A stretch of DNA of 64,000 bases from Hyalangium minutum (GTDB lineage Bacteria > Myxococcota > Myxococcia > Myxococcales > Myxococcaceae). The stretch's first letter is position 1. Every line of letters starts with the position of its first letter. The position numbers and the translations under genes were made by a program. The stretch is from assembly GCF_000737315.1 (NCBI RefSeq), contig NZ_JMCB01000006.1:186001-250000 (forward strand), written 5' to 3'. Below are positions 20,696 to 26,554 of the stretch, piece after piece. The notes under the pieces were generated by a model that was given only the letters and a program-made list of their open reading frames with translations, ran no database searches and was not told where the DNA came from.

Positions 20696-22027
20696 ATGAC
20701 TACGAAGGGAAGGTCTGTCTCCAAGCCTGAGGGGAAGCTGGCGGTGTTGCTGCCGGGCCTCGGGGCGGTCTCCACGACGCTGATCGCTGGCGTCGAGATG
20801 ATCAAGCAGGGCAAGGGCGCTCCGGTGGGTTCGCTCACGCAGATGGGCACTGCCCGCCTTGGGAAGCGGACCGAGGGCCGCACCGTCAAGATTCAGGACC
20901 TGGTGCCCCTGACGAACCTCAATGACGTCGTGTTCGGCGCGTGGGACATCATCAGCGAGAACGCGGCGCAGGTGATTGAGCGCTCGGACGTGCTGAGCAA
21001 GGAGCACCAGGCGCTGGTGCGTCCGGCGATGGAGAAGATCGTCCCGAAGAAGGGCGTGCACAACCCCGAGTTCGTGCGCCGCATCGCTGCCAACCACGTC
21101 AAGGACACCAAGACGCACCGCGAGAGCATCGAGGCGCTGCGCCAGGACATCCGCGACTTCAAGAAGGAGCTGGGTGCCAAGCGCGCGGTGATGATCGTCA
21201 CCTCGTCCGTGGAGACGTACACGGGCTCGCCGGCGGCCACGCACTCGCTGGCGGCGCTGGAGAAGGCGCTGGACGCGAACGACTCGTCCATCAACCCCAC
21301 GATGCTGTACGCGTATGCGGCCATCAAGGAGGGCGTGCCCTTCGCCAACGCGACGCCGAACGCCTCGGTGGACACCCCGGCGCTGCAGGAGCTGGCGCGC
21401 CAGGAGAACGTGCCGGTGGCGGGGCGTGACCTGAAGAGCGGCCAGACGATGATGAAGACGGTCATCGCTCCGGCGCTGAAGGCGCGCATGCTGGGCCTGC
21501 AGGGCTGGTTCTCCACCAACATCCTCGGCAACCGCGACGGCGAGGTGCTGGATGATCCGCAGGCCTTCAAGGCGAAGGAAGTGACCAAGTCGGGCGTGCT
21601 GGACACCATCCTCCAGCCGGAGCTGTACCCCGAGCTCTACGGCAAGGTGAGCCACAAGGTCTCCATCCACTACTACCCTCCGCGTGGCGACGCGAAGGAG
21701 GGATGGGACAACATCGACATCTTCGGCTGGCTGAACTACCCCATGCAGCTGAAGATCAACTTCCTGTGCCGCGACTCCATCCTGGCCGCGCCGCTGGTGC
21801 TGGACATTGCCCTGTTCATGGACCTGGCCAAGCGCCTGGAGTGGAAGGGCATCCAGGAGTGGATGAGCTTCTACTTCAAGAGCCCCATGGCGCTCGAGGG
21901 CCTGCAGGTCGAGCACGACCTGTTCATCCAGACGACCAAGCTGAAGAACACGCTGCGTGCGATCGCGGGCGAAGAGCCCATCACCCACCTCGGCCTCGAC
22001 TACTACGGGGATGACCTCCCGCTCTGA
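20696..22027 (+). CDS. ino1: myo-inositol-1-phosphate synthase
   Basis: PGLGAVSTT, FGAWD, FANATPN, GRDLKSGQT, STNILGNRDG, NFLCRDSILAAPLVLD; AAGGA RBS. Confidence 0.95.
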   Translation: MTTKGRSVSKPEGKLAVLLPGLGAVSTTLIAGVEMIKQGKGAPVGSLTQMGTARLGKRTEGRTVKIQDLVPLTNLNDVVFGAWDIISENAAQVIERSDVLSKEHQALVRPAMEKIVPKKGVHNPEFVRRIAANHVKDTKTHRESIEALRQDIRDFKKELGAKRAVMIVTSSVETYTGSPAATHSLAALEKALDANDSSINPTMLYAYAAIKEGVPFANATPNASVDTPALQELARQENVPVAGRDLKSGQTMMKTVIAPALKARMLGLQGWFSTNILGNRDGEVLDDPQAFKAKEVTKSGVLDTILQPELYPELYGKVSHKVSIHYYPPRGDAKEGWDNIDIFGWLNYPMQLKINFLCRDSILAAPLVLDIALFMDLAKRLEWKGIQEWMSFYFKSPMALEGLQVEHDLFIQTTKLKNTLRAIAGEEPITHLGLDYYGDDLPL

Positions 22028-22943
22028 CGCCAAGACCGGGTCGAAGACGTTCACGTGGCTCGTCACCCTCGCGGCGGCGGGCCACCTCGTCTTCGTCACC
22101 GCGATGGGGAGGCTGCGGTGGGAGCACGCCGCGGCCGACCTGTTGCTTGCGGGGCTGGCTTGGGCCGGCCCCGCGCCGCGGCGTTTTCTCCAAGGCGGCT
22201 TCCCGCTGTGGCTCACCGGCATGCTGCTGGACAACCAGTGGCTGTGGCTGGGCCTGCGCGGCCGCGTCCACACCGGGGACTTGTGGGAGCTGGAGCGTGT
22301 GCTCTTCCCGTGCCCGGACGGCACCACCTGGCCTGCGTACTTCGCCACGCGCACCCACGCGGTGCTCGATTTCTTCTGCGGCTTCTCCTACGCGGCCTAC
22401 CTCTACGAAGTCTTCGGACTGGCGCTGTTGTTCTTCTTCCGCAAGCACCCGCGCTTCGCGACCATGTGCTGGGCCTTCTGCCTGCTGAACGCCATGGGCG
22501 TGGTGACGTACATGCTCTACCCCGCGGCGCCTCCCTGGTACGTGATGGCGTACGGCCCCGGTCCCGCGGACCTCACGGCTCCACCGAGCCCCGCCGGCAC
22601 CGCGCGCTTCGACGCGCTGATGGGCATCAGCTACTTCGCGAAGTTCTACGCCCGCAACCCCAATGTCTTCGGGGCCATGCCCTCGCTGCACGCCGCCTAC
22701 CCGACCCTGGTCGTCTGGCAGTCGTGGGGGTTGGGCCGGAGCTGGCGCGTGGGCACCATTGCATTCGCCGCACTGGTGGCGTTCTCCGCCATCTACCTGC
22801 AACACCACTACATCTTGGACGTCGTGGCGGGAGTGGTTGCCGCTCTGGCCGCCTGCTGGATTGTTGAGTACGCCCTCGTCCGGCGTGAATCTCCAGCTTC
22901 CGCGACCGTCCCCGTCATGCCTGGAGGCGACAGCCGTGCTTGA
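22011..22943 (+). CDS. Aur1-like inositol phosphorylceramide synthase (PAP2_3 superfamily)
   Basis: YPAAPPWY, NVFGAMPSLHAAY and QHHYILD match the Aur1/LPT catalytic domains; multi-pass membrane protein; start overlaps the ino1 3' end by 17 nt. Confidence 0.85.
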   Translation: MTSRSDAKTGSKTFTWLVTLAAAGHLVFVTAMGRLRWEHAAADLLLAGLAWAGPAPRRFLQGGFPLWLTGMLLDNQWLWLGLRGRVHTGDLWELERVLFPCPDGTTWPAYFATRTHAVLDFFCGFSYAAYLYEVFGLALLFFFRKHPRFATMCWAFCLLNAMGVVTYMLYPAAPPWYVMAYGPGPADLTAPPSPAGTARFDALMGISYFAKFYARNPNVFGAMPSLHAAYPTLVVWQSWGLGRSWRVGTIAFAALVAFSAIYLQHHYILDVVAGVVAALAACWIVEYALVRRESPASATVPVMPGGDSRA

Positions 22944-24177
22944 AACCCTGATGGCCTGGATCATGGGAGACCTCTCCCCTTCCGCGCGAATCTGGACGGC
23001 GCTCGGCCCGGCGCTGCTCGCGTGTGCCTACTTCATCCTGGGGCTCGTGGCGTTCTGCGTGCGCGTGGCCATCAAGGGCGTGCCGCAGGATGAGGAGACG
23101 CTCAAGCGCGGCAGCACCATCCTGGTGGGCATGTTCCTGCGCCACTACTTCTTCTGGGTCACCCAGCCCCTGTGGAAAGTGATTTACCGCTCGGGGCTGC
23201 CGGCCAACGCGCTGTCCATGCTGTCGGGCCTGCTGGGCGTGTCCTCGGGCGTGGCGGTGGCGGCGGGGCGCTTCACGCTGGGCGGCTGGCTCTTCCTGGC
23301 CTCCGGCATTCTGGACGTGATGGACGGGCGCATCGCCCGCATCCGCAAGCAGGCCAACCCGGCCGGCGCGGCGCTGGACTCGGTGCTGGACCGGTACGTG
23401 GACTCGGCCATGCTGATGGGCCTGGCCTGGTACTACCGGGACAACTGGGTGCTGCTGCCGGTGCTGGTGGCGTTCCTGGGCACCTCGCTGGTGCCGTACG
23501 TGCGCGCCCGCGGCGAGGGCCTGGGCATCAACATCCGCGGCGGCGCCATGCAGCGCCTGGAGCGGGTGCTCTTCCTGGGCGTGGGCGTGGCGCTGGCGCC
23601 CATCTTCGAGGCCATCTGGTTCCCCGAGCAGAAGCACCCCATGCACTGGCTGGCGGTGGTGGGCATCGTCTTCGTGGCCATCATGAGCAACGTGACGGCG
23701 TTCTCGCGGTTCCGGGCGCTCGTCAACGCGCTGGCGCCGCCTCCTCCTACGAGCCGCAAGCGCTCGGGGCTGGCAATCCTGGGCCTCAACGCGCTGGCGG
23801 GCGCGGTGGCCACGGGCGTGGACTTCGTGTCCGTGCTGGGAATGGTGGAGAAGCTGAGCTTCACGCCCGTCATCGCCACGGCGCTGGGGTGCGTGCTGGG
23901 TGGGGTGGTGAACTACTCGATGAACCGGCTGCTGACATTCCGCAGCCAGAGCGCGGTGGCGCCGCAGCTTGCCCGTTATACGTTGGTGAGCGCGACAAGC
24001 GCGCTGCTCAACGCGGGGGGTGTGGCGTTGCTCACGCTGCACCCGCAATTGGCGTACACGCTGGGATGGTGGTTGGCTCGAGGGGCGGTGTACTTCGCGT
24101 GGAACCTCCCCCTCCAGCGGGACTACGTCTTCAATGACCCGCCGGAGGCGCTCATGGAGCGCCCTCATGCGGCATGA
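22936..24177 (+). CDS. CDP-alcohol phosphatidyltransferase (probable PIP/PI synthase) fused to a GtrA-like domain
   Basis: Signature DVMDGRIAR..GAALDSVLDRY; C-terminal four-helix GtrA pattern ATGVDF..GGVVNYSMNRLLTF..LARY; GGAGG RBS then GTG overlapping the upstream stop. Confidence 0.9.
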   Translation: MLETLMAWIMGDLSPSARIWTALGPALLACAYFILGLVAFCVRVAIKGVPQDEETLKRGSTILVGMFLRHYFFWVTQPLWKVIYRSGLPANALSMLSGLLGVSSGVAVAAGRFTLGGWLFLASGILDVMDGRIARIRKQANPAGAALDSVLDRYVDSAMLMGLAWYYRDNWVLLPVLVAFLGTSLVPYVRARGEGLGINIRGGAMQRLERVLFLGVGVALAPIFEAIWFPEQKHPMHWLAVVGIVFVAIMSNVTAFSRFRALVNALAPPPPTSRKRSGLAILGLNALAGAVATGVDFVSVLGMVEKLSFTPVIATALGCVLGGVVNYSMNRLLTFRSQSAVAPQLARYTLVSATSALLNAGGVALLTLHPQLAYTLGWWLARGAVYFAWNLPLQRDYVFNDPPEALMERPHAA

Positions 24178-25804: not shown

Positions 25805-25873
25805 CAGAGACATTCCCCCCCGCATAAAGGTCTGGCTGCGGTCTGAGAGTTCCCTGCTAAAGAGGTCGTGCGT

Positions 25874-26554
25874 ATGAGCCGTTCCTACCTCCGCCATCAA
25901 TCCGGCCGCATGTTCGAGAACAACTTTCTCGAGGCCTGCTCGAGAGTGCACCCATCGGTGCCGTTCCTCTTCTACATCCCGCTGACGCTGGGCTTGTATG
26001 CCTGGTCTCTCTACGGGGGAAAGACGACGCTGGGGTACAGCGCGCTGTTCGTGCCGCTGGGCGTGCTGACGTGGCTTGGCATGGAGTACAGCCTCCACCG
26101 CTACTTCTTCCACTGGGAGGGCAACGGTCCGTTCACGCGGCGGGTGCATGAGATTACCCACGGCTACCACCACAAGTACCCGGACGACGCGGACCGGCTG
26201 GTGATGCCGCTGGGCGCGAGCATCCCGCTGGCCATCGTGATTGGCGGACTGCTGTGGCTGGTGGGCCAGCCGGTGGCGACGATTCCGTACTTCCTGGGCA
26301 TCGTCTGGGGCTACCTGGTGTACGACTTCCTCCACTGGTCCACGCACCACCGCACGCCGCGCACGGCGTGGGGCAAGGCGCTGCGCGCGCACCACATGGC
26401 GCACCACTTCGCCACGCCGGATCGCAACTTCGGCATCAGCAACATGTGGGTGGACATCCTGGTGGGCAGCGGTGGCCGCCGCCCCAAGCGGACCGAGCAG
26501 CCGGAGCAGCCGGAGGGCCAGCGCCCCGAGGTGACCTCCGGCGTGACGGAGTAG
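25874..26554 (+). CDS. Scs7/FA2H-like fatty acid (sphingolipid) alpha-hydroxylase without a cytochrome b5 domain
   Basis: His boxes EYSLHRYFFH, HGYHHKYP, YDFLHWSTH, HHMAHH; RLVMP; SRVHP start motif. Confidence 0.9.
   Translation: MSRSYLRHQSGRMFENNFLEACSRVHPSVPFLFYIPLTLGLYAWSLYGGKTTLGYSALFVPLGVLTWLGMEYSLHRYFFHWEGNGPFTRRVHEITHGYHHKYPDDADRLVMPLGASIPLAIVIGGLLWLVGQPVATIPYFLGIVWGYLVYDFLHWSTHHRTPRTAWGKALRAHHMAHHFATPDRNFGISNMWVDILVGSGGRRPKRTEQPEQPEGQRPEVTSGVTE

Follow-up and report, generated by a model that had tools for sequence, protein, structure and literature searches.

A probable Bacteroides-type inositol-lipid operon for ceramide phosphoinositol in Hyalangium minutum and other myxobacteria

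Six co-oriented genes and a conserved unit of five

We analysed 64,000 nucleotides of DNA from the myxobacterium Hyalangium minutum (assembly GCF_000737315.1, contig NZ_JMCB01000006.1, positions 186,001 to 250,000; hereafter the window, ~69% GC), in which six consecutive genes on the + strand at 20696-26554, termed g1 to g6, probably include an inositol-lipid operon of the type known from Bacteroides that is adapted to myxobacteria and makes ceramide phosphoinositol. In order, they encode a synthase of myo-inositol-phosphate (MIPS; g1, 20696..22027, 443 aa), a candidate Aur1/BT_1522-type phosphoinositol:ceramide transferase (g2, 22011..22943, 310 aa), a predicted phosphatidylinositol-phosphate (PIP) synthase fused to a GtrA domain (g3, 22936..24177, 413 aa, with a GTG start at 22936 and an alternative ATG at 22951), a secreted protein with a predicted double-lipocalin fold of the AttH type (g4, 24167..25150, 327 aa), a CX5R phosphatase (g5, 25187..25804, 205 aa), and a hydroxylase homologous to Scs7 and FA2H (g6, 25874..26554, 226 aa). 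The first four genes overlap, by 17 nt (g1/g2), 8 nt (g2/g3), and 11 nt (g3/g4); gaps of 36 nt and 69 nt separate g4 from g5 and g5 from g6. This arrangement had been described before any database search (the sequence-only reading), and three sources agree with it: the listing of open reading frames (ORFs), the GC content by codon position (0.87-0.91 at third positions, GC3), and the public annotation of the source contig (GCA_000737315.1, JMCB01000006.1), which contains the same six products with the same lengths. The domains that had been named in g1, g2, g3, g5, and g6 were likewise all recovered as matches in Pfam, NCBIfam, and the PDB.

A terminator-like hairpin at 20432..20455 (+ strand), found by consensus scan only, follows the PNPOx-like gene upstream of the cluster, and this suggests that g1 begins a new transcription unit; such sites are weak evidence in this window, where five were found against 3.0 +/- 1.7 in shuffled sequence. 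Inside the cluster the scan gave two weak sites, both within coding sequence. A scan for sigma-70 promoters, whose consensus is uninformative for a myxobacterium of 69% GC, found none. The two genes upstream of g1 (18690-20362), which encode an aldo/keto reductase and the PNPOx-like flavoprotein, show synteny with the operon in almost every Myxococcaceae locus; this may reflect functional linkage or shared ancestry.

The conservation of the cluster was examined by searching species-representative genomes with g2, which gave 43 loci, and by comparing the proteins of the window with these loci by tblastn. In every main-clade locus with a long enough contig, g1-g5 occur in the same order and orientation; at least four genera are represented, that is, Hyalangium (with related metagenome-assembled genomes, MAGs), Myxococcus, Pyxidicoccus, and Corallococcus. 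An M. xanthus chromosome (L052) has the same g1-g5 core, and in it the overlaps extend to g4 and g5. Because the order of g1-g5 is constant and the placement of g6 varies by lineage, the conserved unit is five genes and the hydroxylase is a lineage-specific neighbour; synteny across these genera was thus found for g1-g5, and linkage to g6 in only part of the family. A chance cluster of unrelated genes was considered and rejected because of this conserved synteny and because of the gene fusions described below.

The core enzymes resemble those of Bacteroides

Two Pfam domains, PF07994 (NAD_binding_5, 3.4e-88) and PF01658 (Inos-1-P_synth, 6e-32), span the full length of g1. Its best match in the PDB is 7NWR, the MIPS BT_1526 of Bacteroides thetaiotaomicron (E 3.7e-140, 470.7 bits); yeast MIPS matches at 9e-51, and the NCBIfam model for the short actinobacterial-type MIPS at 2.7e-7 only. 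By homology, then, g1 is a MIPS of the Bacteroides type, and it would convert glucose-6-phosphate to inositol-phosphate.

The N-terminal part of g3 (residues ~60-260; PF01066, 1.4e-14) contains the complete motif D127-x2-DG-x2-AR-x8-G-x3-D-x3-D, and the C-terminal part (~285-400; PF04138, 6.5e-15) is a four-helix domain of the GtrA type. Among NCBIfam models, g3 matches those for archaetidylinositol-phosphate (AIP) synthase (7.6e-35), PIPSynBT1523 (7.6e-32), and PIPSynth (1.3e-26), with PssA at 2e-6 and PgsA at 5e-5; its best PDB matches are the mycobacterial PIP synthase structures 6h5a and 6wm5 (4e-16). The top matches in both collections are enzymes that act on inositol phosphate, and we predict that the N-terminal domain is a PIP synthase of this inositol-phosphate-specific branch, which would combine inositol-phosphate with CDP-diacylglycerol at the cytoplasmic face to form PIP. 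The earlier expectation that phosphatidylinositol (PI) is reached via PIP, the bacterial route, agrees with these matches. The mycobacterial and archaeal PIP/AIP pathway (PgsA1; Morii et al., 2010), which g3 also matches, likewise has two steps with a phosphorylated intermediate; however, Actinobacteria use the short type of MIPS, the pathway has no Aur1-like step, and its product is PI for phosphatidylinositol mannosides and lipoarabinomannan, not for a sphingolipid.

The Pfam match of g2 is PF14378 (PAP2_3, 8.9e-26), and its sole NCBIfam match is NF052609 (PhinosDhcerSyn, based on BT_1522), a match of 148 bits (4.1e-43) that covers positions 13-290 of the 305 in the model. At E<1, the only PDB match is yeast AUR1 (2.6e-18), with an alignment that spans the Aur1-specific PPWY...PSLH...HHYxxD region and so includes both catalytic motifs; the 148 bits to the BT_1522 model and the 70 bits to yeast AUR1 come from different types of search and are indicative only. 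Within the S-x-H and H-x3-D motifs of g2 (PSLH227 and H265-H266-YIL-D270), H227, H266, and D270 align to H255, H294, and D298 of Aur1, a triad that is essential by mutagenesis in vitro and that cryo-EM structures locate at the base of the ceramide chamber on its luminal side (PMC13133130); H265 aligns to H293. The triad motifs are kept in 110 of the 112 full-length g2 homologues. We regard g2 as a candidate phosphoinositol:ceramide transferase of the Aur1/BT_1522 type; its His-His-Asp triad, which by homology to Aur1 (luminal triad) should face the periplasm, would transfer phosphoinositol from PI to ceramide, yielding ceramide phosphoinositol and diacylglycerol. Many g2 orthologues are already named 'inositol phosphorylceramide synthase' or 'Aur1/Ipt1' in public databases, and the majority of their NCBI records read only 'phosphatase PAP2 family protein'.

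The closest known system is the BT_1522-BT_1526 cluster of B. thetaiotaomicron (Heaver et al., 2022; PMC9246714), in which deletions established that MIPS, PIP synthase, PIP phosphatase, and BT_1522 are each required for PI-dihydroceramide. The two clusters have in common the type of MIPS (470 bits to BT_1526), a PIP synthase with the motif DX2DGX2AR...GX3DX3D, a GtrA module, and an Aur1-like PAP2_3 transferase, and the same logic, that is, inositol-phosphate to PIP to PI to phosphoinositol ceramide, would apply to both. They differ in gene order and in host, which is a free-living soil member of the Myxococcota here and a gut member of the Bacteroidota there. GtrA is no addition: in Bacteroides it is a separate gene (BT_1524), and here it is fused to the PIP synthase. 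The kinship with the Bacteroides cluster that the sequence-only reading stated therefore holds for MIPS, PIP synthase, and the Aur1-like protein and fails for the phosphatase, which is of the PgpA type in Bacteroides (BT_1525) and a CX5R enzyme with the fold of dual-specificity phosphatases (DSPs) here. A conserved secreted double-lipocalin protein is added in the myxobacteria, and an FA2H-type hydroxylase is adjacent in the Hyalangium lineage. Thus the pathway itself is already known, and what is new relative to Bacteroides is the type of phosphatase, the secreted protein with a lipid-binding fold, and the hydroxylase.

The cluster had also been called fungal-like; this goes too far, since fungal counterparts exist only for the final step and the hydroxylase, and the core proteins match those of Bacteroides far more closely. 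With the fungal system for inositol phosphorylceramide (Aur1-Kei1, Scs7, Svf1) it shares the Aur1 fold region and H-H-D triad of g2, the Scs7/FA2H homologue g6, and two lipocalin-like beta-barrel domains in g4 as in Svf1; however, it has no Kei1 subunit, g6 is without cytochrome b5, and PI would be made via PIP, in contrast to the fungal route from free inositol and CDP-diacylglycerol.

The CX5R phosphatase and the probable pathway

Three Pfam families (PF22741, PF22785, PF00782) place g5 in the fold of DSPs and protein tyrosine phosphatases (PTPs). It has the P-loop HCEHGVGRG, a CX5R motif that is kept in 117 of 118 orthologues, and no signal peptide, transmembrane helix, or hydrophobic segment; all of the orthologues carry the generic name 'protein-tyrosine phosphatase'. 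The PDB matches are small archaeal-type PTPs (1.3e-11), PRLs, and PTPMT1 (6e-5). g5 has no match to PgpA in Pfam or NCBIfam and is not homologous to BT_1525, and it follows g4 in all complete main-clade loci. Enzymes with the CX5R fold (PTPMT1, myotubularin, PTEN) are known to dephosphorylate the head groups of anionic phospholipids. g5 resembles them in its small DSP fold and HCx5R P-loop, although its own best matches are the small archaeal-type PTPs and PRLs and it has no lipid-binding domain.

We propose that g5 is a PIP phosphatase, which would act in the cytoplasm to convert PIP to PI in place of the PgpA-type BT_1525. The best available argument comes from a variant cluster (L046) in which the order is MIPS, Aur1-like gene, a triple fusion described below, and an ORF, cut off by the end of the contig, in which MMPL and PgpA are fused, so that a PgpA-type enzyme, of the BT_1525 family, fills the slot of g5. 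Since BT_1525 is of the PgpA type and g5 of the CX5R DSP type, g5 would be a non-orthologous replacement; in that case the step, which has been recognised in bacteria only recently, would have been solved a second time by an unrelated enzyme.

With these assignments, the cluster is predicted to encode all of the steps from glucose-6-phosphate to inositol-phosphoceramide, four enzymatic ones, except ceramide synthesis. What the analysis shows is the homology of each enzyme, the conserved motifs, the constancy of the operon, and gene fusions; the enzymatic activities are predicted from counterparts characterised by deletion in Bacteroides, by structure and mutagenesis in yeast, or in mycobacteria, and the topology and the transport roles of GtrA and g4 are likewise predictions. 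As had been stated for myxobacteria in general, ceramide phosphoinositol has been reported in M. xanthus (Lorenzen 2014, as cited in PMC9246714), and a serine palmitoyltransferase (SPT) of the Bacteroidetes type has been reported in M. xanthus and S. aurantiaca (PMC9386255).

Several points weigh against a ceramide phosphoinositol operon of the Bacteroides type. A Pfam scan of essentially all genes in the 64-kb window found no SPT or ceramide synthase gene. In the literature searched we found no lipidomic or genetic data for Hyalangium and no experiments on g1-g5 of any myxobacterium. Deletion of the Bacteroides GtrA gene BT_1524 left inositol lipids visibly unaffected (PMC9246714). The match of g2 to NF052609 lies below the equivalog cutoff (148 vs 480 bits), that is, g2 is a full-length homologue and not an equivalog, and g3 lies below the cutoffs of all three of its NCBIfam models (120.5 vs 180, 110.9 vs 350, and 93.5 vs 170 bits); because these scores are far below the cutoffs, the substrates of g2 and g3 are not guaranteed to be identical to those of the Bacteroides enzymes. 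Related genomes (L029, L031) have, in a separate cluster, another Aur1-like paralogue, so that a given head group could be the product of either. The similarity of g5 to lipid phosphatases is limited to the weak PTPMT1 match (6e-5). As to the hydroxylase, tblastn found no g6 homologue within 7-10 kb of the cluster in Myxococcus and Pyxidicoccus, and a myxobacterial enzyme of this kind studied in 2009 is reportedly tied both to the 2-hydroxy fatty acids of sphingolipids and to the formation of iso-even fatty acids.

On a rival reading, the operon would make only glycerol-based PI or a derivative of it; g2 would then be a PAP2 lipid-phosphate phosphatase (e.g., the PIP phosphatase) or an Ipt1-like transferase with another acceptor, and g5 a regulatory protein phosphatase. 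The membership of g2 in the broad PAP2 superfamily, its score below the cutoff of the BT_1522 model, and the prevailing database names of g2 (PAP2 family phosphatases) and g5 (protein-tyrosine phosphatases) are compatible with this; but the PDB returns AUR1 alone for g2, through the Aur1-specific region, and the best NCBIfam model of g2 is phosphoinositol-dihydroceramide synthase (4e-43), with no other family matched. In addition, L046 has an Aur1-like gene and yet also a PgpA-type phosphatase in the g5 slot, which argues that a separate phosphatase is needed besides g2, and ceramide phosphoinositol has been reported in M. xanthus. We consider the restriction to glycerolipids improbable, and a ceramide phosphoinositol operon remains the probable reading. 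On that reading, the cluster is the obvious gene candidate for the M. xanthus lipid reported in 2014, for which genes are unassigned in the literature searched; no paper found there links g1-g6 to myxobacterial inositol lipids, and the Bacteroides study (PMC9246714) did not survey Myxococcota. The same core of five genes is present in M. xanthus, a species open to genetic manipulation, and the practical value of the assignment lies in a defined set of knockouts rather than in a new principle.

Two observations concern SPT itself. The aminotransferase encoded at 30532-31722 was considered as a candidate and rejected, as it belongs to class V and is not an alpha-oxoamine synthase; and when E. 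coli Kbl was compared by tblastn with all 0.8 Mb of the loci obtained, a single Kbl-like fragment was found, in L033.

The second Aur1-like paralogue (~49% identical to g2) lies in a cluster at L029:6745-18741, on MAG contig CAVSWU010000002.1 from the same genome as L005, and similar clusters occur in L031 and L038. The paralogue is accompanied by genes for DUF3047, a CDP-alcohol transferase, a class-III aminotransferase, an oxidoreductase of the GFO/IDH/MocA (inositol-dehydrogenase) family, and an MMPL transporter, with a family 2 glycosyltransferase (GT2) upstream. Because a dehydrogenase and an aminotransferase adjoin inositol-lipid genes, this cluster suggests a lipid with an aminocyclitol (inosamine-type) head group.

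The exported double-lipocalin protein and its fusion to the PIP synthase

g4 begins with a signal peptide (h-region at residues 8-26, cleavage between AGA and SA). Searches with its sequence gave no match in Pfam (E up to 1), NCBIfam, or the PDB (phmmer, E up to 10), and none of 39 relatives has a Pfam match at E up to 10, the Svf1 and AttH-class families included. An AlphaFold2 model built from a 40-sequence alignment is all-beta, with a predicted local distance difference test (pLDDT) of 91.8 and a predicted template modelling score (pTM) of 0.88. In Foldseek, the top match of the model is AttH NE1406 (2ich), over the whole length (E 2.5e-10, template modelling score (TM) 0.60), and the next neighbours are Fsa2 and Phm7 (fungal decalin-forming pericyclases), kievitone hydratase, and 25-phosphosteroid lyase. 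From the model we confidently assign a double-lipocalin fold, that is, the two-barrel architecture of the AttH type. The model superposes on AttH, Fsa2, Phm7, and kievitone hydratase; however, g4 differs from the AttH/CrtC/fungal Diels-Alderase class in that its identity to the fold neighbours is 11-15%, the Pfam models of the class do not detect it, and it occurs in an inositol-lipid operon.

Yeast Svf1 is described as a pair of lipocalin domains that hold a ceramide pocket between them, and it binds ceramide without catalysis (PMC10038888). g4 had been called Svf1-like from its sequence; the resemblance stands at the level of the fold, where both proteins have two lipocalin-like barrels (the architecture of Svf1 being known here by its description in PMC10038888), and finds no counterpart in sequence matches. 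The two also differ in targeting, as Svf1 is targeted by a cytosolic amphipathic helix whereas g4, which is without detectable sequence similarity to it, is exported by its signal peptide.

The signal peptide and a cysteine pair (Cys71/Cys108) are conserved throughout the g4 family, as are the polar residues E39, N61, R218, and E321; a D-H-S motif is mostly conserved. The closest relatives are from Hyalangium species (76-91% identity), and the orthologues are all annotated 'hypothetical'. A search with a profile of the family gave 538 representatives at E <= 1e-3, the best 150 of which all have E < 1e-33 and belong to the same family. More distant relatives adjoin genes for an MMPL transporter, a family 4 glycosyltransferase (GT4), and an LPG_synthase_TM protein, or a FabH-like gene, and these neighbours fit a general role of the family in envelope lipids.

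Direct evidence at the genome level for joint action of g4 and g3 is a fusion of the two. Two metagenomic proteins, P0262 (705 aa) and P0268 (731 aa), contain the CDP-alcohol transferase domain, the GtrA domain, and the g4 domain in one polypeptide; each is encoded by an uninterrupted single-frame ORF, and their assemblies are independent (one an NCBI MAG, the other from Logan). The variant clusters that carry such an ORF, with PIP synthase, GtrA, and g4 domain together, lie at L046:1476-6468 and L045:1245-3362. Both fusions retain, in the linker, a hydrophobic stretch and after it an AxA motif, which would place the lipocalin domain across the membrane from the C-terminus of GtrA. We therefore propose that g4 is a periplasmic lipid-binding or lipid-transfer partner of g3; the GtrA domain would move a lipid substrate or product across the inner membrane, with g4 acting beyond it in the periplasm. 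The covalent joining of PIP synthase and GtrA hints at a role for BT_1524, whose deletion is phenotypically silent.

A more ambitious proposal would combine three parts: g4 founds a family of periplasmic double-lipocalin lipid-transfer proteins, GtrA is a PI/PIP flippase, and g5 is the first bacterial PIP phosphatase with a DSP fold. We offer this combination tentatively and think it unlikely to hold as a whole. If it is true, g4 takes ceramide or inositol-phosphoceramide from the PIP synthase-GtrA/Aur1 machinery and passes it toward the outer membrane, and it is the bacterial functional counterpart, possibly even a remote homologue, of yeast Svf1. An exported double-lipocalin protein, sometimes fused to the synthase and elsewhere encoded beside MMPL, could be relevant to the question of how sphingolipids exit the inner membrane in bacteria.

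A carrier is not the only role that the fold allows. g4 might be a lipid-modifying hydratase, lyase, or cyclase: apart from AttH, its structural neighbours are enzymes throughout (the Diels-Alderases Fsa2 and Phm7, kievitone hydratase, and 25-phosphosteroid lyase), and the polar residues E39, N61, R218, and E321 are conserved family-wide, with a mostly conserved D-H-S motif besides. The family alignment, however, contains no clear invariant catalytic constellation; the protein is exported, and distant members adjoin MMPL lipid transporters; and Svf1, described as two lipocalin domains, is a precedent for non-catalytic binding of ceramide (PMC10038888). We rate an enzymatic role as doubtful, and the proposal of a lipid-binding or lipid-transfer partner is the one that we carry forward.

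MMPL genes turn up repeatedly next to members of the g4 family or Aur1-like genes (L029, L046, L050), and in M. xanthus (L052) an MMPL pair lies downstream of the cluster at a distance of ~6 kb.

The hydroxylase is a lineage-specific neighbour

g6 matches PF04116 (FA_hydroxylase, 9.3e-15), and its best PDB match is yeast SCS7 (4zr1, 9.1e-13), to which it aligns over Scs7 residues 187-369 only; Pfam finds no cytochrome b5 domain in its 226 residues. All four histidine boxes of the di-iron site are present (HRYFFH, HGYHH, HWSTHH, and HHMAHH). By these features g6 is a clear homologue of the Scs7/FA2H-type di-iron fatty-acid 2-hydroxylases, and in the Hyalangium lineage it would supply 2-hydroxy acyl chains. 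The family is not new to myxobacteria, in which FA2H-like hydroxylases were already characterised and shown to be functional in 2009 (Ring et al., 2009, as cited in PMC10002949).

The sequence-only reading had counted the hydroxylase as a member of the cluster. This is so in the Hyalangium group, where g6 follows g5 in the same orientation; in Corallococcus the gene lies directly after g5 on the opposite strand, and at the M. xanthus locus it is not found. There is nearly an even chance, in our estimate, that g6 is a neighbour only, that is, a general fatty-acid 2-hydroxylase that serves alpha-oxidation (iso-even fatty acids) and all sphingolipids. Its variable placement, which extends to its absence near the Myxococcus and Pyxidicoccus clusters, and the 69-nt gap that separates it from g5, whereas g1-g4 overlap, favour this, as does the reported link of the enzyme of Ring et al. 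to iso-even fatty acids, with which the title of that study as cited agrees. A functional tie to g1-g5 is favoured by two observations: the gene directly adjoins g5 in two of the three groups of lineages, whichever way it is oriented, which is beyond random placement in genomes of 9-10 Mb, and the consensus scan found no terminator-like site between g5 and g6.

Other genes in the window

Downstream of g6, two paralogous secreted proteins without a Pfam match are encoded at 26678-28236 and 28273-29928, followed by a PhoD-like phosphatase/phosphodiesterase; this secreted pair and the PhoD-like gene follow g6 only in Hyalangium-type loci, and the protein from 26678-28236 has two tandem matches in L002, L004, and L027. 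The founding members of family GH123 are glycosphingolipid beta-N-acetylgalactosaminidases, and a GH123-like glycoside hydrolase (PF13320, 2.5e-10; PF22680, 6.6e-10) is encoded at 31777-33507, ~5 kb downstream of the operon. The gene at 33552-37094 encodes a protein of ~1180 aa with only a weak alpha-2-macroglobulin match (2.6e-5), and that at 37100-38101 a YdjM-family membrane protein. Beyond these, two MMPL/RND-type transporter genes (38147-40684, - strand, and 42478-45150, + strand) flank a gene of the type I phosphodiesterase/nucleotide pyrophosphatase family (40753-42474).

On the other side of the operon, the gene at 9324-10478 joins a FeeM-like domain of the N-acyl amino acid synthase kind (GNAT) to a cyclic-nucleotide-binding domain; its product could be a lipoamino-acid synthase that is regulated by cyclic nucleotides. 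A terpene synthase family 2 protein (PF19086, 2.2e-18), whose N-terminal region of ~360 aa is without a Pfam match, is encoded on the - strand at 3425-5332, where its gene adjoins a cluster of response-regulator and histidine-kinase genes (5336-8651).

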